64,000 nucleotides of DNA, from NCBI RefSeq assembly GCF_964194025.1, contig NC_134475.1, positions 16,430,001 to 16,494,000 of the forward strand. Reading direction: 5' to 3'. This stretch comes from Convolutriloba macropyga. Lineage: Eukaryota. Below are positions 11,040 to 51,040 of this stretch, one piece after another. Positions within the stretch are counted from its first letter, which is position 1; every line of letters begins with the position of its first letter. The notes below the pieces were generated by a model. That model had not been told where the DNA came from and ran no database searches. It worked only from the letters and a program-made list of their open reading frames with translations. The position numbers were made by a program, and so were the translations under genes.

Positions 11040-14000
11040 TACGCACCAATGACAAACGCAAAAGAGCTTTCAAAATCAAATATTAACTAAAAAAGTCTTC
11101 AGTTTTCAACGATAATTAAAACTCATGGGGTACTAGTTCCATTTCAAAAAGCAAATTATTCCATTCGAAAGGAACAGCAAAACTGAATGATCATTGCCCA
11201 AATGAAGTTGTGACATTAGGAACTTTCAAATGGTACGCAAATCGGCATCTAGTCACTTTATCTTTTGGGAAAACTAGTGCGCCAAGATAAATCGAAACTT
11301 TCCACGGATGGTGAATTAAACGGTGACTTTAAAGTAGAATTTTGTAGACGACACGTTGTTTCATGGCTATCCAATGAAACTCTTTGATATAATTTGCTGT
11401 TGGTGAACCAAGTGTTAGCCAAAAGTGAGACGACACGCTGAGTTCATTATACGCTGTAATTTCTGTATAATATAAAAAGGTAGTCCATATTACAGTGAGT
11501 TGCAGTAATCTAGTTGCGAGAGAATCATTACCCGAACTAACTCAATCAATGCCTTTCTGTCGACTGTATCTCTCATTGAATACATTTTCCACAGGAAATA
11601 ATAACATCTACAGCACAAAGAACTAACTTGTTTTGTATATGAAAATCTAGAATCTAAGTTGAAGCCCAACAAAGTAACTTTGTTAAAAAAAATTGGCGTA
11701 TAAACATTGTTCAATATCGCTATTTAAACTATTCTTTCTCTTAAAAAACATGTACTCAGTTTTGTTCGAGTTTAATCTGAGCTTAGCACCACTGAACCAC
11801 TTTTGCAGAGTCGTAAGTATCAAATCAAAAGCCCCTTGATTTATCAGTATTTGCATAAAGGCCGCCCCTTCTAATAGTTTTGAAATGTAACTTAGGTTTG
11901 AGATAGGTTGATAATTTGAACAATCTTCATTGTCAGAATTTGCTTTTTCTCAAGTGGGGCTTAACAATGGCCATTTTAAAGGACTGAGGGAAATATCGCG
12001 CCTTCAGAGAAAGATTAGGAAGTTTCTGGAGGTCGAGGTAATCTGGAAATGATTTTACAAGATGGGTCGGAATGATGTCCAGTGGAGATGTACTATTTGA
12101 CAACGCTGAAATCAACTCTCTAAATTGACTTATTGACAACTCTGAGAACGAACTCATTGAATTAACTTCAGTTTTCAACTTCAGGACCTATTGCAAGGAA
12201 TCAATGCAACAATGTTTTCCACTGTAGATATAAAGAACTCGTTGAAGTCGTTTGCAAGCTGTTTTTTGTTTTCATATTTCGGGAGATATTATACATTTTG
12301 ATCAAGAAGCAATTTTAAGGTAGCAAAATTTGTCGGCTGCAGTTTTTTTTATCAACGCATTCTCATTGTATAAACTACACTTCGCTAAGAATTTTTCAAA
12401 ATAAATATTGGTAACTTTTTCATATTCAGATTTTAGTACAGATGTTTTCGACTTTCTGTATTTGTCATCAAAAAATGTGCATTGGTGTTCAGTAAAGGTT
12501 TTTACTTTGAGTGGTAGAACGGAGTCCAAAATTTTCTCAAATCTTAGACACTTATCCCATGCTTCTTCAATACTCGAGGAAACATGAAACTTTAGGCACG
12601 GCTTTAATAACCTAACAAAACCTTCAGAATTAAACTTTTTCCAATTTCTATACATCAAACGGTGCTGAGATTTGGGTTTTTTCACACTGCTGAGCGAGAA
12701 GCAAAAAAATGAATGGACCGAAGACGGAATAAAGGTATTCGATTTAACATTAGTTGAAATACTGTTTGACGCTAAAAGATGGTCAAGAATCCCACCACTT
12801 CTGTTCGTTTCTCGCAGACGTGCTGAGTTCAGCCAAAATCTTTAACAAATACGTTCGACATTTTCGATTCATCGTTATTTAGGTTCAGTGAATTGTTGAA
12901 ATCAACCAGGAGAACAATCTTGTCGAATTGTAGCCTTTTCTGTTCAAAAAAATAGTAAAGTGATCAATGAATGATTTAACATTTAATCCAGGTGGTCAAT
13001 AATTAGCGATTACTAATTAACTGGTAGCCTCAAATGTTAAAGAGGCGTTACAGCATTAAAAAAATTCCGATATAATTTCAAATTTTTCCAAATGGAGATC
13101 ATAACGGTAAAAGAAGCAAGTTCCACCTCCTCTTTTATTAATCCTTGGTGCACTATAGAGAAAAAACCCCGGGGGACAACACTGCTCTAGACTAAAATCG
13201 TCATCTGAGTTGTTTGTAATCCGCGATTCTACTAATACTCCCAAACTTTTTCTTTTACATCCAAGAGCGCATTCATATCTTTCGTTTTGTTAACGACAAC
13301 GTACATTATGTAGACAAATGTTTAGTTCTGTAGATCTTTGTTTCGCCTAGCTCTGTTTTAATGGAAGACTGGCTAGTAGTCAAGTTTGAGGCACTTTTGT
13401 AGCCAATGACGGGCGGCTTCATTCAGGTAAAATCCTGACACCGAAACGTTTTCAGGCCCGAAATCACGCAACTTAAATTTCTCCTCATCAAAATTAAAAA
13501 ACAATGAAAAGCTTTCGGGTGAGCTTTTGACTTCAAAATTATCGAATATGAAATAATTCAACGTTATTTTCTACACAATACTCTTCCATTTTTGTTGTTG
13601 TTATGTTCTGACTCAATCAATTTCTCAATCAACTCGAAATTTGGCGAATAAGAATTAGTTCAACGTTATTTTCTACACAGTACTTCTCCATTTCTGTTGC
13701 TGTAATGTTCTGACTCACTCAACTTACACATAAATAACAATGCTTCGGGGGTTTTTTGACACCCTTGATGGCTGCTGGATTGGTGTTATTTCTTGATTTT
13801 ACCTCCTTAGTTGATCTTATTTTTCTGTGTACAGTTTCAATTTCACAATTATCTGCCTTTCTCTTTTTGTTTACTCTCGCATTGTGATAACTGGATGAGC
13901 TGTCGTTTCAATTCTTGCCGGGTCCAGCTTTTGCAGCTTTTAGAAAAAGGAAGTCCGGTTTCTTTATCAACGCTATCTCATTGCGTAGTATTGTCACCTC

Positions 14001-22874: not shown

Positions 22875-25800
22875 CTTATTTATTCTGACTAGTTTGTTTT
22901 GTTTTCACGTTTCGTCGGAATGCACGCTTGTTATTGATGTTTTCCTTGAGACGCCTGTCTTGACTTTTTGCTGCTTTGATGAGATTGTCCAATAACGCCC
23001 GCCTCTCTTCCTCGCGCTAAAAAAGTCATCCTATTATCTATCAAATTTGAACTTTAATTGGGATATAAGATTTTTTTCTCATCAAATATACCGCTCGTGC
23101 TCATGTTTCAAGCCAGGGTAGGATATGCATGTTTCGCTTATGCTATAGAGTAGCATAGGAGTCTCAACGCCTGTTTTGAAAAGTACCCGATTTTTGTCTG
23201 TTCCTCATTGTTGTTGGACCATCGGGCTTTCTAAAAATGAAAAAATATTGCTTTCGCGCCCTTTCATCGCCTTCTTTTTTGAATACTATTTACAATATGA
23301 TTGTTTGTAAAACTAATTTTGCAGCATTTGAATTTAAAATTTGACTACTTTAAAATCAGCATATTAATATGACCTAATGCAACAGAAATTTCATGTTTGG
23401 AGTTTTGATTAGTGTTTTTTCATTTTGTTGAAAACGCAATGGTGTAAATTGGATTATCGATTGAGGAAAATTTCAATTAATGCCCACAAATAAAAAAAAC
23501 TACATTCTTTAATAAAACTACATTCTTTACATGCACTTTTTACATACACTTTTGTGGCCTACTCAGGATATTTTTCTGATTGTCTCATATGGCCTTTTAT
23601 ATTCTCAAATAGTTGCTTTAGTTAAGTTCTTAATTAGTTCAGGGCCATGTTTGGTTCTTATTTTCATCTAGGACCATTACCCCTATTTAGTTTGTTTACC
23701 AGTAACAACCAGTGACAATATAACTATAGCACATGTAGAAACCTGTTGTATGTACCTAAATTGTTTGAAGATTTTTAATTGCTCTCGTAGAGAAGCAATT
23801 ATTGTAAACGTGTGTCTTTATGCAAAATTTTTGCTTGGATGTTTTGACTTTTCGAGTGAATTTTACGCTCTTGACTTTTTGCGTTTCGCGTGATCTAAAA
23901 TTCTCGCTCAATCACAATTTCAAGCAGCTGAACTCAATTGGCGGCAATTTAATTTTAAAAGTCAAATGAAAAGTGCGCCGAAACTGGTGCCATTTTTCAC
24001 TTTAAATCTTAATAGTGGTATGTGTTATCCTCTAATGTGGTTATTTGAAGCCCACTATTGAACTTTTTAGTCCAAGTTAGGCTCCACCCTCCCGACTGAA
24101 GCAGGCTGCAATTGATTAGAGCTCCCACTAGTAGTACGAGAGCAATTCTTCCGACGTTTAGTCGGTTATGTTTTACTTTTTTAAGTTTCTTGTATATAAT
24201 CTTAAGTTTCTTAAGATAAAATTATATAATTGGGAAAGAAAAAGTAAAGCACTCGGCGAAGTGATTATACTGGTAAAGCAGGTGTCAGTGTTAGGTTTTT
24301 GTACTCAACGAACACCAATATACGTGCAAATCGGATTTAGAACAGCAATTGCCTTAATTATGTCTTACAGCAACTTAATACCTGCCTGAATAAACTTTCT
24401 AAAATTAGTGCGTAAAAATTATCAGTCAGTGGACTTAGTAAAATCAAAACGAATTGAAAAATACCAAGAAAACTTGCTGAGACACTTTTTTAATTTCCGT
24501 TGTTCAAATAACCTATTTTTTTCGACAATAGTTTGGGATCAGCAGAAAAATATGCTGTCGCAAGGTGTTCTTAAGGTTGTGCTTTTCAGGATTGTAAATC
24601 GAATTTATTCCCACTTTCGCGTAGGATTTTTTTAAATTTATATCACATTATTTAAAATTTTTTAACAGAATTACGTTCAAGTTACTGATCTAAATAAGTT
24701 TTACTGTAATGTCATTTTTTTAACTCTCGGAGATCGAATCATTGTCAAAGCTGAAAAAGATCTATTGGGCGAAATGAAACGCAGGACAATAGGTTCAAAA
24801 TTTAATCGCTGTTAAACTCTACATTAAAAAGTGCAATATATTTGGTGAAACTTTAATTTTATGTAGCTAATCGTTTGTTCTATATCCTCAAGTTTAATTT
24901 GATGAAATGTAGTCAGTGTAGCTGTTGCGCATTATTAGAGAAATCTTCCCGTGCTCCGCAATGACTACATCTCACAACAGTGTCGCTGTTGGGCATTATT
25001 AGAGAAGTCTTCCCGTGCTCCACGTGGAAGACAAATTTGTTTTTTTTTTATTATGCGAGGACGACATTATTCTATTTTTTTTATACGAGGTGTGCGAACA
25101 CACCTTACCGATCCTCTGTTTTCACTGTAACACGTACAAGTAGCATCTGTACTGGGAGGGAGAGGCTAGAGTTTAATGCCAAAAAGGGGGGAGGGGCTGC
25201 AAAACAGTACACCCTGAATGGGAGCGAAACCTTTCGATGCTTTGTACTTACTAAAACTTCTCGAAATTGGTCCATGACCCTCTGTTTATGTCTGTTATCA
25301 ATTGACTTCATCATTCGGTCCAAGTTGTACTCCTTTCGTCTAATTTGCCTCCAGTCGTCGACGTTCATAAGTCGTTCAAATTCCCCACAGAGTAGGGAGA
25401 ACCTATCATTGACCTGACTTTCTTTCCTTCGAAAGTGCATTTTAAGCAGCTGTTCGGAGGCATTTTTCCAATAGTTGTAAATACGTTGCTTTGATCGCCG
25501 TCGCTCGTTTACGATTTTGCGGAAAGCGCGGTGCCACAATTCACGATATTTGGCTCTTTCTAATCGCATTCTAGCTGCGCGGAGTGCTGCTTCTTTTTCG
25601 GAACAGATTAACGAGTGTGATTTTCGGCGGACGATAACTTGTGACTTGTTGGCTTGAGGTTTGACAGTCGCGTGGAACCATTCATTTTTCAAAGTGTTTA
25701 ATGTAGGTACCGCAAAATCCGCAGAGTTTCTTGAAAGGTCAATTTGGGGCAGACGAATTGGTTTGAATTGTTTTGATTTCTTCTGAGTTCCTATTTGACT

Positions 25801-25995
25801 CGATGAGCTAACCAGCGATTTTGTATTAACTTGGGTAAAAATATTGGTAGAGCTGGGTGGTATTAAAGAGAATGATCGCTCTTTTTGGGGTGCCAATCGT
25901 GGTGTTATTTGAATCTCGGGTTTGTAATTATTTTGGGTGCTGCTGTAACTAAAGTTCAACTGTGTTTTTTGATGACTATTTGTGCTGCTTAACAT
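22875..25995 (-). CDS. Unknown multi-exon gene: exon 25995-25231, probable exons 23230-~23171 and 23016-~22890
   Basis: Long ORF (ATG 25995) with a basic, coiled-coil-like C-half ends at AAG|GTTTCG. In-frame exons follow the acceptors catttttag (23231) and acttttttag (23017; REEERRALLDNLIKAAK...). Downstream boundaries are uncertain. Confidence 0.55.
23772..24174 (+). mobile_element. HINE family 1 subtype A
   Basis: subTIRs aattgctctcg (23777) and cgagagcaatt (24137), 3' hairpin ccgac-gttta-gtcgg, then ttatgtttt. Paralogous to 57966-58370. Confidence 0.75.
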
Positions 25996-27429
25996 GCTCA
26001 AGGCGCGTTTGATGTTTTAAACCGTTTCGCATCCGTGTCAGTATATACTGTAAAGACTCTTGTAATTGCTTGCTCTTTAACTAACCGTATAATTTTCCAC
26101 GCTTAAGATTTCTAAATCCCACCTGCATATATCACTTAGCAATTATATAACTTATATTCTTGCAATTGTGTAATGTGTGTCTTTGCAGATGTTTTCAACG
26201 GATTTGAATTGTACCTCTATAAAATTATTGTCCAGAATCATAAGTGAAGATTAAAGGAGCAGTTATAGATAAAAGAGCCAAGCTATAAAAACGCCATCTG
26301 GCTCAAAATTGATGACGTAAGTCTGGTATAGCAAAATAGTGCGATCGGCGCTTCAACTAGGACGAGTTTACAGATGGCTGTGTACTGGAAAGATGATTTG
26401 ACATATTTATTGCATCAAATAGTATCAGTTTATAATGAGGAACAATAAGTAGTATCGAGCAATGACTCTCAATATAGAATTGTGACGTTCAAAAATTGGT
26501 TCCTTTTGTTTGATTCATTGTTTCAGGTTTCAAAATCATTGCAATTTTTAATGTCTATCGGATTCCTTTTATTCAATTGCTCTCAGACGAAGATTGCAGC
26601 AATTATTTGGGCCCTGGTAGTCTGTTTTGAATGCAATTTTGCGGTTGATCATTTTTTTGTGTGACTCTTGACTCTTTGTCCTCAGTTTGCTTTTACGCCG
26701 TTGCAGTTCTCTAGCCACAGAAAGCTCAAAATAGTAATTTTGTCGAACTACGCATTCCGTTTTCCAAGTTAATTTGGTGTCGTAATTTTTTTCACTGGTA
26801 TATGTGAAGGGGTAGAATAGATCCTATTAATTCATGTTGTGGGTGTCTTTGAAAGTTTCGGCTTTCTGCGAGGTGATCTGGCGAGCTATTTGTGACATAC
26901 TTTTGATTGTTTTTAGTGAAGTTGATCGTATTTCACTGCTCTAGTCTGTCGTATCAATAATTTCGCATAATGCGGAGCTGTAAAATAATTGTTGATGAAA
27001 GCTAGTCTTGCAATTTATTTTATATCAGTGTTTTCTGGTGCTTATCCGAAGGCGAGATTGATTGAAAGACTTGATTAAATTCCATAAATTAATGGTCATG
27101 ACTTCAAATTATTAGCGAAATTTTATCAGATATACCGACCAGACAGCCAAAATACTTTTACCTCGAACAATTTAATGATGAATTTGTATGTCAATTTCGT
27201 CATCTCACTGAAGCAAGTAGTAAGTTAAAAAGATTTTCGAGATGTCGAAGTTACCGAGGTTTGTATTGCAATCGTTAAATCCATGATTAAGTTCTAATGG
27301 CAGCTGAGAAGAAAGGCTGCCGACAACTGAAAGATTTTCTTCATTGTATTGTTTGTTCGATAAAAACGTTTGTTCTAATTTATGCTTTCTGCGCATAAGC
27401 ATGCATATTGAGTTGATTTTCAGGTAAAA

Positions 27430-30400
27430 ATGTCCCTTTTAAAAAATAACTCTTCAAATAGTAATTCGTTCAACAACGACAAAGCAACATTGGAACATGG
27501 ACAAAGAGCAGAGGAAAATACCTCAAATTTTGTCTACAACCCGAATCACAAATTACCCATTTATACGCAAAGATCCCGATTGCCAATATACGCATCTAGA
27601 AGTGAGATTTTGTATCTGTTAGAGAAGTTCCAGGTCCTTGTGCTGGTGGGAGAGACGGGATCTGGGAAGTCCAGTCAAGTGCCACAGTACTTGCTTGAAG
27701 TTGGATGGGCACATAATCGGTGATGAGCATTAGAATCATTGCACATGTATTACTTTTGCAATTATACCTATAAAATGCTGATTCGTTCTTTTTTCAAAAA
27801 GTTTAATTGTTGATTAATTTGTTGATGAAGGTTTTGAAGCTTTTAACGCTCAAATGATAGTTTCAAGTTACATGGTTAAAATTAAGAGCTTCAACTGATA
27901 AATTGCTCTCGAACTAACTTTGACACATATATTGTAAACATGTTGGTCTTTTTATGCAGATTTTTGCTTGACCGTTTTTGCGCTTTTCTTCTAGAACCTT
28001 CTTTGACTTAGCAAGTGACTTTTTCATGCTGCACTTCTTCATTTTTAGTGATCTCAATTGGTCTCATCGTTTGCTGCCAATATAAAAGCGATTGTGAGTG
28101 GTTGAGGAACAAAGCCGTTGTAAGTTAGTGGTTAAGATGGCAGATCGATATCCGGAAGTCGGGGGTGCGAACCCCCACGAGGTCGGAGTTTTTGCGCCCA
28201 TAAAAAATTTCATAAGCTATACACCTAAATTAGATTGACCCGCCTGTTGTTCGAGAGCAATTTATCCGACATTATTGGCTTTTGTCTAAGTGTCAATTTA
28301 ATCCTGGAAACAGCTCTTACTGAATGATCACCTGAGTTGGCTTTTACCAGTAACCGTATCCAAGAAATCTAAATATTGTCAAAGATCTAAGCCAACTAAC
28401 CAAAAATTTACACTAAGGTTATCTGGTCACCGGACAATAGATTTAAAGGACAATATATCGAGAAAAATTGGGACAATAGATTGAAAATTAATCTGATCGC
28501 ATTGGCTGAAATTAAGCGTTGTTTGCGAGCTGGCATAAAATTGATACATCTGGCCTCGCGAGCCATAGCCATGCCTTAACGGCCGGTGGGACTTGATATG
28601 AATCTATCACAACCGAACAATATATCACGACTGAACTTTTAATGCCTTGTATATGTGAGCGCTTGAATCTGGCTGGCCGATACGCAACTTGAATAATTTG
28701 ATTTTCGATCTATTGTCCTAGTACCAGGTTATCTTGACCGTTATGAACACAAATTCTCATGATGAACATCACCTTTGTGTTAGAAAAATGATAGCAGTCA
28801 CTCAGCCTAGACGAGTTGCCGCTGTCTCTTTAGCAGCCAGAGTAGCCGAGGAACGCAACTGTATTTTGGGCGACGAAGTCGGATATTCGATTCGGTTTGA
28901 CGATTGCACATCACCCAGTACCAAGATTAAATTTCTTACTGACGGGCTATTGGTTCGCGAAATGATGGGTGACCCATTGCTTGAAAAGTATTCGGTCATA
29001 ATGCTTGACGAAGCGCATGAACGAAGTATAAATACAGACTTATTAGCTGCTTTGTTGAAAAAGATTTTGAAGAAGAGAAAAGATTTAAGGGTTATTATGT
29101 CCAGCGCGACTATCGACGCTCACAAAATGAAGGACTATTTTAATGTGAAGGAACGTGGCAACAATAACGATAATGCAGCCATTTTGCAAATTGAAGGTCG
29201 TTGTTATCCCGTCGACATAATGTACTCGAAACATCCGGTTGATGATTATGTAAAAGCTACTGTTGATACAGTTTTAATGATTCATAAGACCAACGCCCCT
29301 GGTGATATTCTTGCATTTCTAACGGGTCAAGACGAGGTTGAAGAATGCTGTCGTCTACTTACTGAAAAACTGAAGACGTTTTCGTCCAAAACTAAGTACA
29401 GAATCCAGTCGGTGCCTATGTATTCAAACTTGCCTGCCAGAGAACAATTAAAGGTTTTTCAGCGAGCACCCAGTGGGACTCGAAAAGTGATTTTCTCAAC
29501 AAATATTGCTGAAACCTCGATTACTATTGATAACATTATTCACATAATTGATTGTGGCTTTGTTAAAACTACAGTTTATGATCCAGATTTCAATACTGAA
29601 ACGTTGACAGTTTTACCCATCTCACAAGCATCGGCCAATCAGCGTTGCGGAAGGGCGGGAAGGGTCACGTCAGGAAAATGCTATCGACTTTACTCCGAAG
29701 AAGAATTTCTCAAACTGAAACCCCAATCTGTGCCCGAACTCCAAAGAAGTTCCATGGCTTTCCCAATTTTGCAGTTGAAAGCTTTGGGTGTCTCTAATGT
29801 TGCAAAGTTTGACTATTTATCCCCTCCCCCGGCCAAGAATTTTTCGCGAGCGCTGGAATTGCTTTACTCTTTAGGGGCAATTGACCCAAAAGTTGAATTG
29901 ATAAACCCTCTTGGTCATCAAATGGCAGAAATGCCTCTAAACCCGATGTTTGCTAAATGTCTGTTAAAAGCGAGTGAATTTGATTGCTCCGAAGAAATTC
30001 TAACATTATGTGCCTTGATGCAAATTAAAAATTTATTCCATGTTCCTTCAAGCGGAAAAGAGAAAATGAAAGCTGCCAGAGTTCAGAGAGAATTTTATGC
30101 AATGGAGGGTGATCATATGACGAATTTAAACGTATTCACCACTTTTGTCAACAACCGTCGGAGTAAATCGTGGTGTGACAAATATTACGCAAGCTACGCT
30201 TCACTTAACAGAGCATATAATATCAGAGAACAGTTGCTAAAGTATGTTCAGAGATTTGGAATCGAGATGTCATCGGCTAAAGGCTTCGACGATGACAAAG
30301 TTTTGAAGTGTTTATGTTCGGGGTTCTTTGCAAACGTGGCAATATACACTTCAAGAGGCTGTTTTAAAAGTTTGCGAGATCCAGTTAAATCGCCGGATTT

Positions 30401-36920: not shown

Positions 36921-38389
36921 TTCGTCGAAACTTTGCCTGCAGTTGTGTAGTTTTCAAGTCAATTTATATAAGTCTAATGCCAGTGTATAAATGCCATTTT
37001 ATGCAGCTATTATTGGGTGGTGGCGAATAATTCTTTCCTGTTGTCTGAAAATGAAGAACCAATTAAATTAGAAAAAGCTTTACGTACCAAAACCACCTGG
37101 AGCATTTCACATCAAAGGTGAACGCTTTTCACCTGGTTGACCAATATAGTTTTATGGGTGTGTCATTAATAGCTTTAAAGCTTTGTGCTTGTTCACTTTG
37201 ACTGCGTTTTCTCACTGCTTACATCGTCACGCCTAGTTGCTAGGTGAGACTTCATTTTCAAAGTACACAAATGAACAAAATTTTTGTTTCCATTAACTTC
37301 TGTAAACAAGTTAGCGCATGTTTTGCCCTGATAATGGTTTGTTCAAATGTTCTCCAACTGTTATGTGCACTCGCTGAGTTATATAAAATTGAATCAATGG
37401 CGAATACCTTGAAAATCTCTAGCTGACGGTTTATTGTGTTAGTGACTCGGATAAATATTTCTTCCTTCTGTATAGCTTAACAAGGTGAATACTAGTTAAC
37501 AGGGCGAAGCTCAACAACTGTTTCAACCAAGATGTTTGCTTTTAGAGAGGTAGACAAAGCGTCAACAGAGGGCAGAAGTTTAAAAAAGCTGGTATATTGT
37601 CATAAAACAGCTGCGGTTACCTTATGCAATTATTTCTCTTCCCGGTCTTTTTATGCAATTTTTTCTCTTCACAGTTTTTGCGCTTTCGTGTGAGAACATT
37701 GTTTGAATGCTTGTGACTTTTCCACAAGTTCTTCATTTTTGACTGGCCTAAGTTGCTCTCGTTCTGAAATAAAGTTCCTTGGTAAAAGCGATTGTGAACG
37801 AATGAAATCGAAAGCATTGTGGCTGATTGGTGTAGATGTCAGTTTGCCTACCTGGATGTCAGTGATTTGATCCCTTGTGGGGCCTTTTTTGTGCTCCTAA
37901 ATTTTTTCTCAACTACTCCCCTCAAATTTAAGTAAGGGAGGTTTTTAAAATTCTACTTCACTAGATAATCGAAAACTAGAAAATCCAAAAATTCGTAAAC
38001 GACTGAATCGGCCATTTTTGAGTTTTTGAATGATGTCACTTCAATTCTCGGCGCAGGCATAAAAATCGACCGCATGCGTCTTGGTAAAAAGTTCGCTTGG
38101 GATAAAATTCCGCCCCCGAAGTTGGGGTTGGAAAATGAGAGGTGGGGCTATATGACAGAAATCAAACTCGTAATACCGTCATAAGTTTTAGTTATAAGTG
38201 TCAAAATCTGCCTGGAAATGCCGGTCCTGGAGGGGGGGGGGTGTTCAAGCAGCTCGAATTGAAAACATATGAATGCACTCACTTATGGTAAAAATTAGAT
38301 TATGATGAATTATTAATGGCGATTGCAAGTGAAATTGTTATTTGTCTTCAGATACTTAATGAATATCTTCAGATGAGAACATTCTAAAC

Positions 38390-39581
38390 ATGCCTTCAGA
38401 TCTCCCGTTAAAGGTCAAAATTGGTCCCTCTATTCTGAATTCTGACCTGTCATGTTTAGCAGACGAATGCAACAGTCTAATTAAAAATGGCGCTGACTAT
38501 CTTCACTTGGATGTAATGGATGGCCATTTTGTACCCAATTTAACCTTTGGGGCTCCTGTAGTTAAGAGTTTGAGGAAACATGTTGAAAGGAGTGTGTTGT
38601 TTGATATGCACATGATGGTAGCTGAGCCTGAAAAATGGATCCAAGGGAACTTTTTCACACTAATTGTCGCTAGAACCGGCATACACCACATCATTATTAT
38701 GTAGTCGCATATCAACCTCTTGGCCGCATATTATAAAGAGACGAAATTGCTCATGGAATTTATTGAAATGAAAGCGTGTAGATTGGGATTGAACGCAGAA
38801 ATGGTATCGTTCGGCCGTCAAAGAAATTTTTCCCAAGAAACATGCGCAGGCTGATATCTCAAAGTGTTAATTGTGGACACTATTAAGAATTTGATGATGG
38901 AAAGCTGAACTTGTATTGGTGTAGAATCCGGTGATTTTTCTAATTAGAGTTACGTCTGAGAAATGTCCTTAACATTTTTTTAATTAAGTCAGCTATAAAC
39001 GAACAAACGCAAGCAAACTGCTATTGGCTAATAATTGATTATAAAATATAAGCGGAAATGCACGGTATGCAAATGTTAAATCTATATTTAAGAATTTGCG
39101 ATTTAATTTGAGCAATTCTTGCTGAAATGAAATGGTTCCCTAGCATATTAAAGATATGGCTAATGCCGGCGCCGATCAGTACGTGTTCCATTACGAAGCC
39201 TCCAAAGATCCGGCCAACTGTATCCGGCTAGTGAAGGAATCCGGTATGAAGGTTGGAATGGCTGTGAAACCCAAAACAGACGTTACTCTAGTTGACGAAT
39301 ACGCCGACATGGTCGATTTGGTACTGATTATGACAGTTGAACCCGGTTTTGGAGGTCAAAAGTTCATGGTTGACATGATGCCCAAAGTGGCGCATTTGAG
39401 GCAAAAGTTTCCTAAATTAGAAGTTGAAGTTGATGGAGGAGTTTCTCCAAAAAACGTTGACCAATGTTTTACAGCGGGTGCTAATCAAATTGTCTGTGGA
39501 AGTGCTATTACTCAGAACTCAGACCCAGCGGGTGTAATTAAACAACTGAAAACAATTGCAGATGATGCCTTTAAATTTTGA
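38390..39581 (+). CDS. RPE: Ribulose-phosphate 3-epimerase (exons 38390-38645, 39154-39581; 227 aa; GG-AG intron)
   Basis: [39 protein letters not shown] and EVDGGV motifs. The join gives EKWIQDMANAGA, colinear with animal RPEs. Confidence 0.93.
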
Positions 39582-40001
39582 CTGGGGCAGTGATTTGACA
39601 ATTTTTTTTTGGTATTCTTTTGGTATATATGGATTAACATTAAATGCCCGAGTTTAAACTGTTAAACTGTAGTAAAATGAGTTGTAATACAGAAAAACCA
39701 TTATAGCGTTTTCAAAACTATATCAGATTTTTTCATTTAATAGCGTGATGTTATCGTTTTGCTAGCTCTATTTTTAGGTGCGGGTTTGACGGGCAAGAAG
39801 GCTAAAAAGCACAACATACTCGTCATTATTGAGCATTACCCATAAATCGATTACCGGATTTCGATCTCAACAATGATTGTTATTACTGGAAGTGCCGTTG
39901 TTATCAGTGAATTGAAATGCTTTTATACGGAAGACAACTATGATAATGTGCGTGGTTCATCTGTTTCGATTTCAGTTAAGAAATGTGAAAACATTAACAC
40001 A

Positions 40002-43000
40002 ATGAATCTGCAACCGTCTTCATCCAGTGCATTTTCTGCATCTGAAGTGGTGTTGACGGAGGTCGAAGATCCATATCAGAACGAATCGACGTCATTCGAT
40101 GGTCCTCCACCTGCAAAAAGGCTCAGACTAGTGGGTTCGGGATCCACACATGTCTCGGCGGTCACTGACGCAAACCAGGCAGCTAGTGATCCTATTCTGG
40201 AAGAGCTGTTTGGTGAGAAATAATTGGAAATCCTGTGTATGAATTTTTAACAAGATGAGAGCGGGCTGTTGAGCAGTCTAGGAGAGTTGTCTTGGAATTG
40301 TCATTTTTTAGCTAATTGAAGCTAAATGAAAAATTGAATGATTTAGATGTTTAAGAATCTGGTTGCTATTCCGTCAAAATTAGAGGCAATTTTATGAGCT
40401 GGAGGTAAAATTATAAGTGCCAGTTGAATGCAGGTAAAAGTTAAAATAATTTAACGTTTCTCAAGATGAGCTTGCATCTCGTAAAGAAGGAATGGGTATA
40501 TAATAATAGTAATTGTGGTTCCTGCGTAATCGCAGTGGAACATCATTAGGCCTACAGTAGCCTGTTCAAAGCTACCTTTTTTCTCATTATTCCCCACATT
40601 TCAGACTGATCTTTTTATGAGCAGCATTGCTCTTTTTTTGTACCTATAGCCAAAAAAGAATAATGCTGCTCATAAAAAGAATAATGCTGCTCATAAAAAG
40701 AATAATGCTGCTCAATCTGAAATGTGGGGAATAATGAGAAAAAGGGCAGCTGAGAGCAGGTTACTGTAGGCCTAATGCTGTTCCGCTGCGATTTCGTAAT
40801 TTCAGTCGTTTTTCGGGGATATTTTTTGGTTATTTTTGCCACGTTTTAGTCAAAGGAATACTGTTTCATTTTGAACCTTATTTTAGGCACACTGAAAGTA
40901 TCTCACGCAGTGCCACAGGATCAATTGAGGAACCTCTCGTCCGAAGAACAAGTCAGAACTCTGCGTTCTACCATCACCCAGTTGCAATCGGAGAAACCCT
41001 TGGAAACTCGAATGGCAGCTGCCAACTATCTTTTGAACGTTGCAATCAACACCAACATTCCGAACAAGCTTATTTTCTCACTTTTTGAACTAGTACAGCA
41101 ATCAGAAATACCAGATGCATTGTTAAGCATTCTTCTCCGAATTCTATGGATTATCGCGAACGAGAGCTTGTTAGTAAAAAGCATGCTGGTCAAGATTTGC
41201 GTGAAGTTGCTAAGTTCCAATTTAAACAGAGTGGCTCGAATTGCTTGTCTTGAGATACTGGGTGACGTTGCCGATGTCGCGGCAGACAGTTCACAGATGT
41301 TGAAAATATTCGAAGAGTTTGCTCAAAGTCACGATTCTCGAATCAGGCGAGCTGTTGTTGAAATGATTTGTGGTTATGACTCGAGAGGTGGTAAAATATC
41401 GCTTGCTGTTTACCATAGATGCCTTGACTTGCTGAAAGACGAAAATGAAAAAGTTCGAATTGGTGCTATTAAAATCATGTCGAGTTATGCTAATAAATCG
41501 CCGAACGTCAAGATTACAATTGGTGATAAAGGCGATGATTATATGCGATTAGAAGAACATGCATTTTCTCAAATTTGCGAACTGGTCAATGATATTCAAG
41601 TTCCAGTTCGCGTTACGTCTGTCAGTATTCTGAGAAACTTCATAGGCGTCGATCAGAAATTTTTGCAGCAGACTTTAGGGAACTGTTTCCTTTCGCCTGA
41701 GGATTAAAATTTTGTTTTCACAAGTATGGAAAATGGGAGTTCATTTTCATGGGTTTTCCCTTGATGGTATTTTTCCTATCTGAAATGGGTGGTTATTTTC
41801 TTTGGAGCTCACACCGATTTCTTTCGAAATCGGTGTGAGCATATTGGTGCGCATATTTACCATCAAAAGATTTTGCAAAGCCTATGCTGTGGAGGTAGCT
41901 ATTGGTGCATTGTGAAGGGGAGAGTGAGTAAAGTTGTTGGCTCCTTGGCATCATTGCATCATGAAAAATAAATGGCCGTCATTATAGCATAATTGTTGCT
42001 ATTGACGGGTAACCCCCCTTAAACTATCGGGGCTAGTAGACTAAGTAGACTATAATACGAGGGAACCAAAATAGCAATTATAGATGATTAAATTCTACCA
42101 AGGGGAAAGGAAACAATTCCGCTTTTAGACAAGCAATTGATGTCACAGTTGCGAACGAAGCGTAGCTCCCATCAGAAGAACGCCGAGTTGGTTCGAAGTG
42201 GTGCTTACAGCTCAGGTAGACGGTGGGGAGACGATGCACCTCTTGATAATGTAGACGAACAGTCCTTGTCGCTTATAAGCTCGGGCGCTTGTGGAGCTTT
42301 AGTTCATGGTTTAGAGGACGAATTCAAAGAAGTCAGAATTGCTACTGTTGAAACTTTGAGCCACCTTTCGAGTAATCGAAGTACGTTTGCAAAAGAAGCT
42401 CTGGATTTTTTCATTGATATGTTAAACGATGAGATTGAATTGGTTAGAGTGAAAGCGTTGGAAAGCTTGGCGAACATTTCACACCATGCCGTGTTGAGAA
42501 AAGACCAGGTTGTGGATACTTTGAGTTGTTTGGACGATTATTCGGATATTGTGAGAGAGAAAGTGCATTATTTATTGAGGAAAATTCAATTTGAAGAGAT
42601 GGGTTGCCTGAAGTTGACGTTGCAGCGTCTGATGAGGAATTTGAAGAAGTACCCGCTCGATAAAACTTCCATTTATGGTGCTCTGAAGTACCTGGGTTCT
42701 AAGCATTCAAATTTTGTCATTCCTTATAGTAAGTGCGATGGTATTTCCTTTTTTTAGTGAATCATTTAAAAAGGAAAGTGAGCCTTTACCTTATAATATG
42801 AACATCTAGAATTGATCTTTCTGCTGCTAAATTTGATTTATAATGGCCGGGCATACCTCTTATTAAGCGACATTGAGCGATATCACTGATATCACTTAAA
42901 ACGTGCGTAGATATAACCAGGTTTGTGTTGCAATTAAGTTCGTTTCGTAAGCCCTTATAACAAATCAATTGTTTTAGATCATTTTTGCATTTGTTTATGC

Positions 43001-46000
43001 TGAATTTGTTTAACCTGAAATATTACGCTATGCGAGTCTGCAGCTGGCGGATATACGACAAATAAGACTAGCTAAATGTACTCTTGATTGTGAATGTTTC
43101 AGTGAAAGAGCTGTTATGTGCACATCCTTTTTTGGACACTACTGAACCCAATGTCTCAGATCCCTTCTACATCGCAATTATGATCCTAGTTCTCAATGCT
43201 GCCCACTCAACCAGCAGCATCATTGGACTATTCCCCCCATTCATAAACCAACATCACCAGTTTCTCAAGGAATTGCACCCAGAGTTTATACCTGATCTGG
43301 ATCTGAATAAAAACTCATTGAGGTTCTGTTACCGGAGACCAGAAAGTGCAATCAAGTTTCAAGATGTAAATGTGATTGCTCGAAAACAGTACGAATCGGT
43401 GGTGGAAAAACTGAAAGCGTCTGGTGGTAAAATAACAATAAGCTTGCTGAAAAATTTATTGCGTGACCTAGAACATTTGAAAAATTGTGACAAAACATCT
43501 GGACCGGCCAATTTTCTCTGTGCATCTTTGAAAATAACAATAGCTATGACAAAAGTTTTCGAGAAATTAAAATCGTTAACACCGACAAGCCAACTTACAT
43601 TGTCTGATGAGTCAGTTTTTTCTGATCTGAAACGATGTGTTAGTTTCAGTTTTTACTTGGAGGGCATTTTTAATGGTTTGTCCACTGAAACTGTTTCAAA
43701 CATTCTCGAAAATCGATGCATTGCGTCTACCCTTATAGTATTGTTTACGCTATTGAAAGAATCTAATGACATGGCTGGTGGTGAAAAGGCTTTACTGTGC
43801 AAGAATTTTGCTGAGAATGTTCGGAGTTTCAGATTGCGTATTACATCTTCAAGATTACTGCAAGGTCAATTTAGCACTGATCTTCTAAAGCCATTATTGG
43901 AGATTGATCCTTCAAAGTTGACGTTAATTTGTAAGTTTCTGCATCCATTGTTACTGGAAAGTGCTCAAGTGGCCGTTAGAACTATGGTACTTACATCAAA
44001 TGAGTTTGCAACAGGAGTGTCAATGGCGAAGGCAGTTATTAACCATCCACAGAGCTCAGACAGAGTTGAGTCTTTTATGGCTGGTCTGCTGTTGGCTTTG
44101 CGATTAGGTAAATATGAAAACGATAGATATATACGATGATGGTAGTAGCATTTATGTGGTTCTTGATTATTCAGAATTTAAGCCGCCAGCTTCATTTGCG
44201 TGTTTACTAGTGGAATTCAATTCAAACGTGAACCAAATTTGGTGCCAGTTTTTTTATTAATAGCCGCCCTCATCTTCTCAGCCGGCTATTATAGCGCTCC
44301 TATTACGACTCGAAGAGGAGTATTGGAGAAGTCCTTTTTTTTAATCAATTTTATTGGAGTGATTTTTGAAGCGGGAAATGAAACGCATGAAAAAATTTGG
44401 AGTGATTTTTGTGCTGAACAAAAGTGAAGAGCGGAGCGAAAGGAGAGTGGTTTTTGTTCATACCGCTGTTTTTGAGAGAGCGAGAAATTGATGTGTGAAA
44501 AAATTTTCTCTAAGCGAGAGAAATTTTTTTGTTCACGTGCGGCATTTTAAAGCAGTTTTTTTTCATTTCTTTTGGTTAAGAGGTTTGGTTATGATTTTGT
44601 TTTAATTTTAGGCTGGTTTTGGTAGTGTTTTGAAGGTTTTTGGAAACTCATGTGAATTTTATGATAATTCGGAGGTTTTTAATGTATTTTACTGATTTTC
44701 GGGCTAATTTTTGCGTTTTTTGACGATTATTTTGTTTTACTGGCTCAAATGGGTATTGAAGAAACCCCTTCTACTTGAGCAATTTTATGATAACAATTGG
44801 TTATAGTTTTGTGCGTAAGAATCATTTTTTTGTTGAGAAATATGACAAAAAAATTCTGAAAATTGGAACTATTTTTCTTATTTTTTTTTGCAGTTTTTCG
44901 TTTTCTTTCTGTTTTTAGCTAAGTATCTTTGCCTATTATGACTTGCCTATTGTTTTGCGAGCATCTGGATACCCTTATGGCTGAAGGGAGTTTCTCTTTG
45001 GATTTATATGTATTTGAAATATTAAAAAAATTAGTGACTTTTTCCACTTTTTCAGTGGAAGTTGTTTTTTTTTCATAATTTTAGCCTAAAGTATTTTTCA
45101 TAATTCACATAAGTGATTTTTGTAAGTACTAGTTGTTTTGATGAAGTTATTTTGGCAGAGATAGTTTTTTCGGGATCTCAATTTATAACAAAATTTGATC
45201 AGATTTTTTATCATATTTTAACAAATTTGATTTTATTGTTTTTACTTTTTTGTTTGATGACTTTGTTTCAAGATAATCATAAATTAGTGAAGGCACGTTT
45301 TGTGTGATGTGTAGGTGTATGGCGTTTAAATGGATTTTCACTTCGAGTCGTTTCCGGAATTCTTCCGGCTATGTTTTTTTTTACTTCGTCGAATAAAAAA
45401 ATGTTTCGCTTTACCTCATTTTGCCGCTTTTTCAACTTTTTGCGTGATATCTTTTTGACTTCTCTAGGCTAGTTTCTCTCTTCTCTCATTCTGCTAAAAT
45501 TGATTTTGAACATCAGTTGCTCAGCAAAGCAATTCAAAATGAACAGAGTCAGTATAAAAAATTGAAGTCAGAAGTAGAAACGGGATAAACCCATAAAGCC
45601 CAATTTTAGATGCCCGCTATTTGAACGTCGTTCCTGTAAGTCTTAGTTACCATCTCTAATGCTTATTGGTATTGATAGTAGCCCCTGTAGCCTCTCTCTG
45701 AGAAACAGAAGTACGTTATGTTCAACTACGAAATGCCATCAAATTAAATCGGACTTAAAAAATGTTTTTGTACAAAAATCTTTTTTTTTTAATATCTTCT
45801 ATTCTTCCAATCCCAATCATGCTTATTGGAATCAACGGCGGCTATTTTCCGGCAATCTGTCGGGTATGTTTTTAAATCGTGGTAGTGGTCAATGCAAAGC
45901 TCGAATGGTTGAAGTAAGGTTCAGTTTACCCCGTCTGTTGGTCTAGAACAATTCGACCGACCTTAATCGGTTATTAATAGCCGCACAGCGATAGCTGGCG

Positions 46001-49000
46001 CTATTATGGGCCTTATCTTGTTTATTTTACAATTCAAAGAATTTGAATTGTATTGGGGAGGTGCCTTTTTTAAGATCTGTTCACACATTTTCATTATTTT
46101 TGAATTCAAATTGAAGCGATGATTTTGGTCACGACGAAACAGGAAGTGAAGCGACAAAGCGAGTGGTTTTGCGGCGTGAAGTTTTTGCATTATAATTTTT
46201 AAATCGAGTGAGAAAAGGTTCATGAACAAAACTTCGCTTTCTCGCTAGTGGTTTTCTGTTCACATGCGGCATTTTGTTTATTATTAATTCCTCTCGAACG
46301 AAGTTCGTAGCAATTATTGTAAAGCTGTTAGTCCTTTTTAAGCAAATTCTTCGCTTGACCGTTTTGCGCTTTTCTAGATTATTCTGTGACTTATCAAGTA
46401 ACTTTGTTCATTTATGAGTGATATCTGTTGCTCTCACTCCGAAGTAAAGCTTGTTGTTAAAATGAAATCGATTGCAGCAGAGCTAAACTAAGGCCGAGTG
46501 AGCCCTGCTTCTGCTCAGGGATCGGTAGGCGTGGTCGAATCCCGGCGTGGCAATGTTTTTTTGCTCCCATAAAGAAAATTTTATCTAGGCTACGCCCCTG
46601 AATTAAATTGCCTCGCCTGTTTGAGAGCAGTTCTTCAGACATTAGTCGGTTTATGTTTTTTAAAATATTTTTCGATATTTTTCAAATAGTTTTCACAATC
46701 CAGTCATGATCCATTCTAGGTCTAGTTTTTTGTTTGAACCAAATTTTATTTTCCCGCTAATGGTTTTATGTTCATGTGCAGCCTTTTTTGTTTGGTTTTT
46801 TTCCAATTTTATTGATGAGATTTTTTTTAATGACTTTTCCAATCCCGTCATAATCCATTATAAATCTAGTTTCTTTATTCAGTCAATGAAAATTCTTTGA
46901 ATTGTTGGTCAGGACTTCGTCCTGCTATGTTTTTTCCGTCATGATTTTTGTTACGACCATATGACGTCACAGCCACTTCAAATATGCTTTTTTAAAATAT
47001 TGCAGATCTACGAAGCTATTGCGGCTGTTTTCTGGCAATCTGGCAGCTAGGTTATTTTCCTGTTCAGAAATTTGCTCGTGGGGATGCATATGTTCAACAT
47101 TTTCCCCCAATTTTTGCTCATTGTTGACAGTAGTGTTGTTGTGCTTACAGAGGGTTGCTGAGTAGAAGATAGAAGAGGGTTACTGACTTGTCTGATCAGA
47201 CTTATTTGGCTAAGATTTTAGAGTATTCAGATTTTTTGTAGAAAGTTTTTTCTAATTTTGCCGGAACAATCTGCGTCAGATCGAATGAGGGCTATTAGTA
47301 CTTCCAAAGATATTGTGGATTTGAATTTTTGCCTGTTTTTAGCTTGTTTTTGTTGTTGCTCTGACTTGTATTTCAAGAATTGTCTCGTTTTAATTTTAAG
47401 ACGTTTTAAAGAGGTTTCAATTTTGTTAACAGCCTTTTGATCTCACTGATTTTAATTTCCCCCTATTTTTGGCGGAGTTTTAGCGAAAGTGTTGTTGGCT
47501 GTACCTCTTTGAAGACAGAAGAGGGTTGCTGAATTGTTTTGATCGGACTTATTCGGCTAAATTTTTTGACGATTTAGCATAGCAAATATCAAACATCAAA
47601 GACATAGATATGTGCAAGATTCTTATAGCGGGTTTACTTGTTTATTAGCCTTAACTTCATAAATTGAAATTTGCTATTTGTCAATTATCCTTTTATTCCT
47701 TTTCGTAATTTTGTCTCATTTTTTGCTGGTGAAATTGATGTACGCTTTTTTGAGGACGTCTAGAGTGATTTAAATGAACTCATAATTGAATGTGCTTACT
47801 TTAAAACCACTAATTTTCGAAAAAAAATGTTCTCATTTTTTCATAGTCCTAACTATTTCTCCGGTTCATTTTTAGTTGTATATGCCTCGATGCTTTGTGA
47901 CATTTAAAATCTTTTATTCAGTGTAAAGAACTCTCCTGATTTTCATCGAATCCAGTGTATTGAAATTTGATTCGGAATGTTTGTTCATTGTTTCGGAATA
48001 TTTGTTTTATGTTCAATGTTTGTCTTGACAGTCTTTTTATAGCTGCGAAGCTGTAAGCTGAGCGTAGCTATATTGCGGTGCTCTTGGTTTTTTTTTTGTT
48101 TCGTCGTCTGATGCTTCATTTTCGTTTTACATTTGTTCTAGAACATTCTGTCTCGTCACTGCTTAAATGGCTTTTTCGCGCTTGATTTCACGCTTTCTGC
48201 GTGACCTAAATGGCGGTTATTCAGAAACAGAATCTGTTCCTAAAACAAATTTGATTTTAAGAAAACAGATTGTATGGTCTGACAGCCGAGTGGTTAAGGC
48301 GACTGGCTGTTAATCCGGAGATCGCCGGTTCGAGGCGCGACAGGGAAACTTTTTTTGCACCCAAAAACAACCTCCTTTGAAATAAACTTGTAAGTTTTAT
48401 AGGCGGCGGCGATAGCTATTATCAACTCACTTCTGTATCTTTTTCCATCTGTATTTTACGGCACGCAAGTCTATTTCGCAGCTATTCCGGCAATCTGCCG
48501 GCTATGTTTTCAACTTTTGGAAGTCAATGAGAAGCGAATGGCAGATGTCAGTGCGCAGCTAATACTTTTTGAGTGGTTATCTTCCTTAAAGCACAAGTAA
48601 TTTTTCAATTTATACCTGTTTGTTTTCCTTTTGTCTTTTTACTAAGTCTCAATAATGGCTGATTTGATTGACTTTCTAATGAGGCATGAGTCGGTTTATT
48701 CAATGTTTCTATTTGGTAGCGTTTGGTTTTTATGACTTTGTCATTCTGTATTCTCTTGAATTACGGGTTAATTTTGTAGTTCGTATTTATGGGCTGTTCT
48801 GTTGTGTAATCGCTTAGTTTAGAAAACGACGGGCCCTATATGCTTCCCAATGGATGGAAAAGAAAACAAACTTTCATTTTTGCAGTTCATAGTTTTTCTT
48901 TTTATCACTGTTTACAAAATTCTGTTTGATTTTTATTTTTTGTGCACATATTTGTTGTTCTACTTGCTTCTGTATCCCTTTACGTGAATTGAGCTGGGTC

Positions 49001-51040
49001 ACATTGACTCTCAATCTTTTGAACGATTTCCTATAATAGCTAATGGTTGTAGCGACATTGGACCATACTGCCTGCTATAAATGTCACTGGCTTTTAGTTT
49101 TTGGTTGTTCTGTTGTGCTGTCACTTGGTCACATTGGCTATTTTTTGAGCATAGTTGAAACTTTTGAGCTGTTCAACGGTTTTGTCCCATTTCTAATAAT
49201 TTGGAAAATTTTTCAACTTTTCGAAAAAAATTGTTTCGAATTTTGATAGTTTTTCTAGTTTTCTTTTGTTGCCGTTCTTGTTTTCTTTTGTTTTCGCATT
49301 CATGACTTTTTGCGTGTCGACTTTTCGATGCGGATAGATTGAATCTATTCGATTTGTAAAGGCGGTAGTCTGAACGCCCATGGAGCTTCTTTTTGTAAAT
49401 ACGGACTAAGTCATCAATAGTTTTTAAAACTAAATGGGAAAAAGACCTTTTCTATATTCTTTGTTTTATCTTTATCTTTTTGTGTTGTAGTGTATGCTTT
49501 TTTGGCCATCGATGGCTGTTCTTCTAATTAAGTTGAAAGCGCGGCCTTCAGTTTGTCAAATTTTTTGGGTGTGTTTTGCAGGATTTTTTGGTATTTTTTA
49601 ATTCGTCGTCTTCGATTATTGTTGCGACCCTCAAATCACGCTGCAACAAGTAAACATGACTTTTGTTGACTTTTTCCGTTCAGCCGCTGATTTCTTGTTC
49701 TGACAAAATCAGGTGATTCCTTAATAAGAATTGTTTTTTAATGAGAACTTCTTTAGAGTTGCGTTCGATCGAGACCAAACTTTTCGATCCCTTCAATATT
49801 TATCTTTTGCGGTGAAATACAAAAACCAACTTGACTGGTATTATCAGCACTGGTATACATGTCCGTCGTTGTTTCAGATGCCATCGAGTTTTAAATTACA
49901 GAGCATTAATTATGTAATTTTAAATATTGCTATCTGCTCGTTAGTAATTTGAAATATTTTTGTCTGCATTTGGTTTGGTACACTATTATGCCAAAAGGTA
50001 GGATGATTGAAGTAGGAACATTGTGCAAACGCACAATAGCGAGCCTCCTTGTCCGAATGGAAACATTAAGAGAAATGGAAGGGATTTTTACGGGACGACT
50101 TACTTTGGTCATGACTCCGCCATGCAATTGATCAGAACGTTCGTTTGTTTACCGATGAAACGTGAAAATGGTGCAAATCGTTCTTTTTAAATTTTTTGAA
50201 GCTCCGGAAGTTGCATTCAAGTTTTTAGTAACGAATTATGTATCTAATCGTTGAGGCCACGCAGCCAGCTGTCTGTTTAAACGAGTGATAGCTTAAAAAA
50301 CGTTATTGTATGGTATTTTCATTCCTGTGGTACACTGTTGCTGCCAGCCTAAGAAATAGAAGTCACGAAAGAAAGAGCCACAACTGTCTTGCTTGTTATG
50401 ATCTCGTTCTACAACTTTTTAGCAATATTGTTCTCTTTTGTTTAAGGAGTTTTTTTTAAACAAGTTCATTTTTCATCATTTAATTGTGTTTTTTTTACAG
50501 CTTCGCAAATTTTGTAGTAATTCTGTCGGCTACTTGCGGCGAGAAATCATTATGTGCTTTCGTAAATAAATCCATTCAATAATGTGAGTCGAAACTTTAA
50601 ATGTTTTAGTGAATTGAATTCCATAGATGTTGCTTTAGCTGGTAATTTTGAACGTTGTTGCTTCAGACGTGACGTTAAATAACATTGATGACATCAACAG
50701 AGTTCGAATTGTCTTGACTTATCCCGGTGGAACGGACCAAGTCGTTTCTCCGAGTGCCGACAAGTTCCGAGAAGCTAATGATACTGAAGATGACGAACCC
50801 TCATCGCCAATCAAATCACGGAAGGTTCCAGATCCAAAAGCTCCGAAGACTTTGAAACTGAGCACGACTTGTTTTATTTCTCACTCCTCATGGACGGAGC
50901 CAGCTGATCTGTTGATTGGTGTTTATTTAGCTGTGCCTAACTTGTTTGACTACACCATGTCTGTGACAAGTTCTGAAAAATTGGTATCGATTAGCGAAAG
51001 TGTTAAAATTGTTATTCATCCCAAACCCACAGCGATATAA
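40002..51040 (+). CDS. INTS4: Integrator complex subunit 4 (exons 40002[or 39873]-40212, 40887-41678, 42129-42728, 43103-44107, 50667-51040; ~993 aa)
   Basis: HEAT repeats. Signature segments FLQQTLDKQLMS, SSGRRWGDDAP, SGACGALVHGLEDEF.EVR, HPFLDT.EP...DP.YIA and C-terminal SHSSWTEP...HPKP. All joins are in frame. Confidence 0.92.
40525..40796. mobile_element. Fold-back/MITE-like palindrome in INTS4 intron 1
   Basis: ~85-bp inverted arms (cgcagtggaacatcattaggcctacagta...cattattccccacatttcaga and its reverse complement). The inner arms contain a 21-bp unit tandemly repeated x3. Confidence 0.8.
44254..45872 (+). mobile_element. HINE family 2 element in INTS4 intron 4
   Basis: 5' ttattaatagccgc; 3' gcggctatt + hairpin ccggca-atc-tgtcgg + tatgttt. 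Its internal parts resemble 35700-36550. Confidence 0.55.
45971..47055 (+). mobile_element. HINE family 2 element containing a nested family 1C element (46285-46660)
   Basis: Same family 2 termini. The nested copy has aattcctctcgaac...gagagcagtt + cagacattagtcgg and a tRNA-like remnant. Confidence 0.55.
48276..48350 (+). pseudogene. tRNA-like (Asn-GTT-like) module of a family 1C remnant
   Basis: agccgagtggttaaggc (A box), ctgttaa loop, ggttcga (B box). The acceptor stem does not pair. Confidence 0.55.

Follow-up and report, generated by a model that had tools for sequence, protein, structure and literature searches.

A predicted, recently gained GG-AG intron with paired ends in the ribulose-phosphate 3-epimerase gene of Convolutriloba macropyga

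Introduction

In nearly all animals, about 99% of introns follow the GT-AG rule. To our knowledge, the large-scale exceptions are found in larvacean tunicates and in some protists. The G-V/AG introns of Oikopleura were reportedly described by Denoeud et al. 2010, and we know of no description of larvacean G-V/AG introns that includes a terminal helix anchored at position +1. Introns of unusual kinds have been described in other systems as well. The non-canonical introns of Fritillaria borealis have the borders AG/AC and AG/AT and are thought to derive from MITEs (PMC13326754, PMC11282704). The nonconventional introns of euglenids leave the transcript as circles, through a mechanism that is not known and may not involve the spliceosome (PMC11282704, PMC12501133). 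In the structured introns of teleosts, a helix substitutes for a protein-based recognition step, that of U2AF2 (PMC4691745). Our literature search returned no paper linking acoels or Xenacoelomorpha with non-canonical introns or introners.

The window analysed here is a stretch of 64,000 nt of Convolutriloba macropyga (assembly GCF_964194025.1, contig NC_134475.1, positions 16,430,001-16,494,000, forward strand), and positions below are counted from its first nucleotide. It is AT-rich and eukaryotic, with a G+C content of about 36%, close to that of the Symsagittifera roscoffensis genome (36.7%). The original prediction for this DNA, made from its sequence, was that the gene for ribulose-phosphate 3-epimerase (RPE) contains a GG-AG intron with paired ends, and this interpretation is supported by the independent evidence presented below. 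We put at about 0.7 the probability that the intron was gained recently, is spliceosomal with G-N...AG borders, carries a terminal helix and resides in a functional single-copy RPE gene.

Results

The RPE gene and its predicted intron

The features of the gene and of the introns compared with it are listed in Table 1. Exon 1 matched residues 5-80 of human RPE (E 3.6e-31) and exon 2 residues 83-220 (E 1.5e-46). The two residues between these matches (Q and D) come from the join, giving a gapless alignment to the human enzyme and confirming the RPE of 227 aa without indel that had been proposed. Exon 1 ends with TGG ATC CAA G at 38645, the bases that follow are GGAACTTTTTCA, and the intron ends with TGAAATGGTTCCCTAGCATATTAAAG at 39153. 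AAG is present at both intron edges, which allows the borders to slide 3 nt leftward and yields four equivalent registers (GG-AG, GG-AA, AG-AA and AA-TA), none of which is GT-AG or GC-AG. When junctions were enumerated against the ortholog, the four with the best scores all excised the identical 508 nt, and the best GT-AG option scored 20 lower and added 10 residues.

An AG terminus is present at the 3' end in the register 38646-39153, for which the predicted GG-AG join reads TGGATCCAAG/ATATGGCT (also as TGGATCCAAG/ATATGGCTAAT; slashes mark splice junctions). The predicted donor AAG/GGAACU matches the consensus at positions -2, -1, +1, +3, +4 and +6. The acceptor is weak (AAAG, with no pyrimidine tract). 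Two AG dinucleotides lie near this end: the first (39142-39143) adjoins the helix described below and would shift the frame if joined to the GG donor, and the second (39152-39153) is the homology-exact acceptor. Set against the canonical definition of U2-type introns (GT-AG or GC-AG), the predicted RPE intron has the AG at its 3' end and lacks the GT or GC at its 5' end. The junctions, the exact join and the empty sites in relatives (see below) agree with the proposed GG-AG intron and its donor AG/GGAACT at the sequence level. The claim that two genes share an identical donor hexamer also held: within the 64-kb window, the 8-mer AGGGAACT is present at the two predicted donors and nowhere else.

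U12-type introns begin with /RTATCCTT, and their TCCTTRAY branch site lies 10-26 nt upstream of the 3' terminus. This type was rejected for the RPE intron on sequence, as the 5' end reads GGAACTTT. The sole match to the U12 branch site, TCCTTAAC, fits the consensus perfectly and lies in the middle of the intron (38966-38973), 180 nt from the 3' end; it is probably due to chance, since the other haplotype does not keep it.

Table 1. Features of the RPE gene and of the paired-end introns compared with it.
Feature	Position	Strand	Borders or sequence	dG (kcal/mol)	z	Basis or remark
RPE exon 1	38390-38645	+	ATG to first base of Asp codon, phase-1 boundary			Translation and PDB match
RPE intron (predicted)	38646-39153	+	GG-AG	-17.5	-4.0	508 nt; nothing but its exact removal restores the ortholog, empty sites in relatives
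RPE exon 2	39154-39581	+	Begins AT ATG GCT; stop codon 39579-39581			PDB match
RPE intron, 5' helix arm	38644-38657	+	AGGGAACTTTTTCA			Spans the 5' splice junction; 13/14 complementary to 3' arm
RPE intron, 3' helix arm	39128-39141	+	TGAAATGGTTCCCT			13/14 complementary to 5' arm
RPE intron, spacer and acceptor	39142-39153	+	AGCATATTAAAG			Sequence, junction enumeration
INTS4-like intron 2 (predicted)	41679-42128	+	GG-AG	-27.7	-5.6	
L007 INTS4 intron B (predicted)	L007:12432-13482		GA-AG	-20.7	-4.1	
L007 INTS4 intron C (predicted)	L007:17000-17382		GC-AG	-22.1	-4.4	
DHX35 intron	27720-28783	+	Donor TCG/GTGATG (weak)	-17.4	-2.8	Related case

Relatives, intron gain and gene function

Relatives were found by a protein search with RPE exon 2. 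An uninterrupted RPE ORF is present on long genomic contigs (225 aa in L001, L002 and L007; 227 aa in L003, L004 and L008) and on the 976-nt JGI contig L006; three related species (L001, L003 and L006) are without the RPE intron. The DNA of these three relatives agrees at the site with the proposed join: L003 reads TGG GTC CAA GAT ATG and the joined window sequence reads ATC CAA G/AT ATG, an exact match of empty site and filled site. The RPE tree unites the window, L003, L006 and L001 in one clade (100/100). L003 is the sister of the window (92/82), and L006 and L001 branch successively outside this pair. One gain of the RPE intron in the lineage of the window would explain this pattern, as against three losses, because the window is nested inside three successively branching intronless relatives.

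A further assembly, L005, is 92-97% identical to the window and carries the RPE intron. It represents the other haplotype of the same species, because its differences coincide with half-depth variants in the read sets. The intron ends are identical in four read sets and in this independent assembly, which upholds the argument that the unusual donor is no sequencing error. The interior of the RPE intron forms a heterozygous half-depth bubble (38669-39124; half-depth contig 38639-39154) with several indels. Between haplotypes, the interior diverges by 15% and the exons by 0.4% and 3.7%. In INTS4 intron 2, the haplotypes differ by only 2%, indicating that haplotype divergence is very uneven over 3 kb.

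Within the RPE exons, the haplotypes differ at 13 synonymous and 4 non-synonymous positions, and both exon frames are intact in both haplotypes. Exon 1 has one synonymous difference; exon 2 has 12 synonymous differences and the four non-synonymous ones, all of which lie within the final ten codons. In INTS4, 17 synonymous and 2 non-synonymous differences are spread over exons 2 and 3. Purifying selection acts on RPE in the reading frames for which this join is required. The gene order DHX35-RPE-INTS4 is common to the window and the relatives, and this conserved synteny identifies the window gene as the RPE ortholog. Read-set contigs give the RPE locus single-copy depth. Since the locus is a functional ortholog, the predicted 508 nt, or something very close to it, must leave the RPE mRNA.

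An insertion in a conserved enzyme gene has the look of a disrupted gene, and no transcript was seen; the protein search found no transcript-derived full-length RPE from this species. The locus could on these grounds be read as a decaying pseudogene, or the intervening DNA as removed at the DNA level, neither of which would need unusual splicing. We regard this reading as extremely unlikely. The excess of synonymous over non-synonymous differences with intact frames, together with the synteny, speaks against pseudogene status, which the original prediction had named as a finding that would overturn it. As for removal at the DNA level, the four read sets contain the complete unspliced locus. 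They behave as DNA, because over 38000-43300 they have no joints even at canonical introns, and none of their contigs contains a joined, intron-less form of RPE. DNA-level excision and a retrocopy were both rejected on this basis.

Pairing between the ends of the RPE intron

The two arms had been predicted to pair at 13 of 14 positions, including one G-U, with +1 opposite -15. This was confirmed on the sequence, the remaining position being a U-U mismatch. The helix consists of the last 2 exon bases and the first 12 intron bases, with a partner that ends 12-14 nt before the acceptor, and it covers the CCCT just before the AG at 39142-39143. Pairing was evaluated with RNAduplex, using positions -3 to +20 against the last 45 nt of the intron and 1000 random intron windows as background. 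Only 1 of the 1000 random windows paired equally well (0 of 2000 in a separate run). The terminal stem closes the whole RPE intron in both the MFE and the centroid fold.

The 5' arm lies within the first 23 bases of the intron and the 3' arm within the last 29, and both stretches are identical between haplotypes. The invariance of the ends despite the divergence of the interior hints at constraint, part of which ordinary splice signals could explain.

Paired ends in other non-GT introns

We compared 15 introns from three genes in three species, a small sample. Lineage-specific introns were delimited by an intron-less ortholog and introns at shared positions by canonical signals. Ten are ordinary GT introns (seven at positions shared between species and three lineage-specific), and their ends do not pair (dG -5.5 to -10.4, z -0.7 to +0.9). 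The z values of all four non-GT introns (Table 1) are below all ten of these (exact one-sided rank test, p = 1/1001). The DHX35 intron has intermediate pairing: its first bases pair with CATCACC located 11 nt before the acceptor, and its position is lineage-specific relative to L008. Among the 15 introns, strong end pairing recurs only in those with a non-GT or weak GT donor.

The second GG-AG intron, INTS4-like intron 2, has the 5' end GGAACTGTTTC. Its arms (41679-41694 and 42105-42120) pair over 16 bp or more and place +1 opposite -9, and the stem closes the intron in the MFE and centroid folds. This intron is absent from both relatives that cover the position, L007 and L008, which have continuous ORFs there. 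The INTS4 gene of L007, a contig from a related species, contains lineage-specific introns of its own, one GA-AG and one GC-AG, whose ends pair over 13-15 bp; the phenomenon therefore extends beyond the species of the window. All four non-GT introns are missing from the other species compared. The last INTS4 intron of the window (44108-50666, GTAA donor) is at a shared position and differs widely in size, with 6.5 kb here and 333 nt in the relative (L007:18257-18589).

The four non-GT introns have a common layout. All four donors read exon-AG/G-N-A, all four introns end in AG, and the G-N...AG register is the only one that gives a constant 3' dinucleotide across them. Position +1 is paired with a base at -7 to -19, the helix measures 12-20 bp and has its start in the exon or at +1, and the predicted acceptor is the earliest AG to lie about 6 nt or more beyond the 3' arm. 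The RPE intron and INTS4 intron 2 share 10 of 11 bases at their 5' ends (GGAACT[T/G]TTTC); we estimated the chance of such an 11-base match in the same register at about 3e-5. The RPE intron would accordingly be placed, as a candidate member, in a lineage-specific class of G-[G/A/C]...AG introns with paired ends in these worms. The correlation between non-GT borders and pairing could also reflect intron age and not function, since young insertions would have inverted repeats as well as poor donors.

Excising any insertion in silico will give back the ortholog sequence, regardless of how the RNA is actually spliced. The G...AG borders could in that case be no more than insertion edges and the stem a relic, with splicing at a weak cryptic GT-AG pair just inside the insertion (in RPE, from ATT/GTCGCT at 38666 to CCCTAG/ at 39143). 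In-frame, stop-free GT-AG alternatives do exist near all four non-GT introns, adding 30 nt in RPE, 6 nt in INTS4 intron 2 (41685-42128), a net 0 in L007 intron B and 3 nt in L007 intron C, and in RPE CCCTAG looks a better acceptor than TTAAAG. We consider such splicing, which for RPE the original prediction had named as a finding that would overturn it, quite improbable. The alternative GT donors are very poor, with the exonic AG missing in all four and a pyrimidine at +3 in three of them. GT occurs every 16 nt or so, and the 1 to 5 in-frame combinations found per intron are about what chance would give. Moreover, the edges are AG/G-N-A...AG in every one of the four cases, unlike random edges. 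In RPE, the join would read CACACTAATT/CATATTAAAGATATGG and leave the insert GNFFTLIHIK in the protein; this hydrophobic stretch of 10 residues would sit in a helix of the enzyme, where neither the three relatives nor human RPE have an indel. That the nearest GT options either insert 10 residues, as here, or delete residues (donor at 38618) had been foreseen correctly in the original prediction.

Origin of the introns

Several observations favour a mobile-element origin. The intron positions are lineage-specific, and the inverted repeat starts with the first base of the intron. The RPE intron and INTS4 intron 2 are alike in their terminal 11 bases alone, a pattern expected of different MITEs mobilized by one transposase. 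INTS4 intron 1 holds a genuine high-copy palindromic MITE, and introns derived from such elements occur in Micromonas, Fritillaria, Amoebophrya and Polarella (PMC11282704). The match of the terminal 11 bases points either to descent from one source, for example the inverted-repeat ends of a mobile element, or to a sequence requirement that both introns have. Together with the inverted-repeat ends and the apparently recent gain, it suggests a mobile-element source. On this view, the intron would exist because a non-autonomous DNA transposon (introner or MITE type), with the paired ends as its terminal inverted repeats, landed in an exon and proved spliceable by chance, and the stem would play no part in splicing. 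We hold this to be a serious possibility, at somewhat less than even odds. It concerns origin, and it is compatible with a recently gained spliceosomal intron except on the function of the stem. The stem may be a remnant of how the intron arose, may have a helping function, or may be both.

Compared with introners and MITEs, the introns have terminal inverted repeats (13/14 bp in RPE and 16 bp or more in INTS4 intron 2) and lineage-specific positions. Evidence against a transposon comes from copy number: by 31-mer depth, the RPE intron and INTS4 intron 2 are single-copy, and a BLAST search of the 64-kb window gave no other copy of either. In addition, a comparison of the exon end with the intron 3' end revealed no significant target-site duplication (RPE, p = 0.05; other introns, p = 0.26-0.87), the edge microhomology amounting to AAG and TTTAG only. 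The 3' arm is subterminal, with a spacer that varies from 6 to 18 nt. The contrast between invariant ends and a diverged interior in the two haplotypes suggests constraint.

Allowing one mismatch, the motif GGAACTNTTTC is enriched in the window (17 matches against 7.8 expected). Partners for the additional matches were sought, the candidate element ends being GGAACTNTTTC...GAAANAGTTCC, and none was convincing in the window. The pair at 9529/12411 was rejected as a paired-end element, as it lies within a segmental duplication of about 1.6 kb (8956-10595 and 11843-13684, 92-94% identity). The MITE-like repeat of INTS4 intron 1 is palindromic and about 270 nt long (40525-40793), and in each of the four read sets its 31-mer depth reaches the thousands. 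INTS4 intron 2 contains a 32-nt palindrome forming a 15-bp hairpin (CTCACACCGATTTCT/AGAAATCGGTGTGAG, 41807-41840).

Other features of the window

Two identical 24-nt motifs, TTTATGATAAATTTATTGAATAGT (79-102 and 2471-2494), match the 32-nt spliced leader of S. roscoffensis at 19 of 24 positions and lie just upstream of two LINE reverse-transcriptase fragments (453-3192). Like the G+C content, these motifs support an animal that is probably an acoel, and the incomplete match indicates a relative of S. roscoffensis, distinct from that species. A Pfam search for further genes in the window returned LINE reverse-transcriptase fragments only, with no match for the remaining ORFs. By homology to L008, a minus-strand gene has exons at about 25251-26001 and at 22885-23016. 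The intron between them (23017-25250) is ordinary (GTAAGT...TTTTAG), shares its position with the relative and has no end pairing. A run of N, either an assembly gap or a mask, occupies 6722-7291.

Discussion

From the DNA, we infer that an ordinary U2-type spliceosome most likely cuts the RPE transcript at AAG/GGAACU...UUAAAG/AU, using a G-G donor and a normal AG acceptor. The stem would bring the weak donor beside the acceptor region and so replace weak U1-based intron definition. By covering the CCCU beside the out-of-frame CCCUAG acceptor, it would also cause the next AG to be used. Such a helper role is not self-evident, because helices that bury a 5' splice site usually inhibit U1 binding. 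A bolder proposal is that the class as a whole is defined by RNA structure and not by U1 pairing: a helix starting from the first intron base and ending 6-18 nt before the AG would set the cut, and any G-N donor would work. We find this proposal rather doubtful, although worth stating. If true, structure-defined introns would parallel, in a bilaterian, the nonconventional splicing of euglenids, and structure-defined splicing would offer hairpin-ended insertions a route to become introns at once. A search for Rfam families, including snRNAs, returned none in the 64-kb window.

For a spliceosomal G-N...AG intron with a terminal helix, the wider meaning is as follows. A second animal lineage, probably the acoels, appears to have a high rate of non-GT introns (4 of 15, in a small sample) with strong end helices, absent from sister species. 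If transcripts confirm the cuts, these worms would provide a natural system of young, datable introns with filled and empty sites in close relatives, in which both the origin of new introns and the replacement of the 5' splice-site consensus by RNA structure could be tested. Such genes will be annotated wrongly by any gene predictor that demands a GT or GC donor; on L005, both RPE and INTS4 are split at these introns in the gene calls.

Among known systems, introners of Micromonas, Amoebophrya and Polarella (PMC11282704, PMC7789003) resemble the introns described here in their origin by insertion, inverted-repeat ends and, in some cases, non-canonical borders. Introners are, however, multi-copy families with clear target-site duplications, whereas the RPE intron and INTS4 intron 2 are single-copy and lack significant ones. 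The structured introns of teleosts, with (GT)n/(AC)n ends, are alike in having an end-to-end helix that bridges the splice sites; they differ in being canonical GT-AG introns with simple-repeat arms, in which the compensated defect is at the 3' end and not at the donor (PMC4691745).

Euglenid nonconventional introns are similar in their non-GT borders, in end-adjacent pairing that brings the ends together and in their new positions (PMC11282704, PMC12501133). Their borders are variable, with no fixed AG, their pairing is short (+4 to +6 with -8 to -6) and their hosts are protists. By contrast, the helices of the non-GT introns studied here are 12-20 bp long and begin either in the exon or at +1, and every one of these introns terminates in AG. 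With Fritillaria borealis (PMC13326754, PMC11282704), there is likeness in recent gain, species-specific positions, inverted-repeat ends and a spliceosome tolerant of non-GT donors. The border dinucleotides are different there, a YAY triplet is duplicated at both borders in the manner of a target-site duplication, while no clear duplication is present here, and 95% of introns are non-canonical, compared with 4 of 15 in our small sample.

The larvacean G-V/AG introns of Oikopleura and Fritillariidae (GA-, GC- and GG-AG; PMC13326754) are alike in beginning with a G that is not followed by T, in their normal AG, in their lineage-specific positions and in their presumed U2-type removal in an animal. 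The RPE intron is a prediction from DNA, and the phylum differs (probably Xenacoelomorpha). The G-[A/C/G]...AG border pattern that, once confirmed by transcripts, defines this tunicate type is predicted from DNA in all four of our cases (GG, GG, GA and GC).
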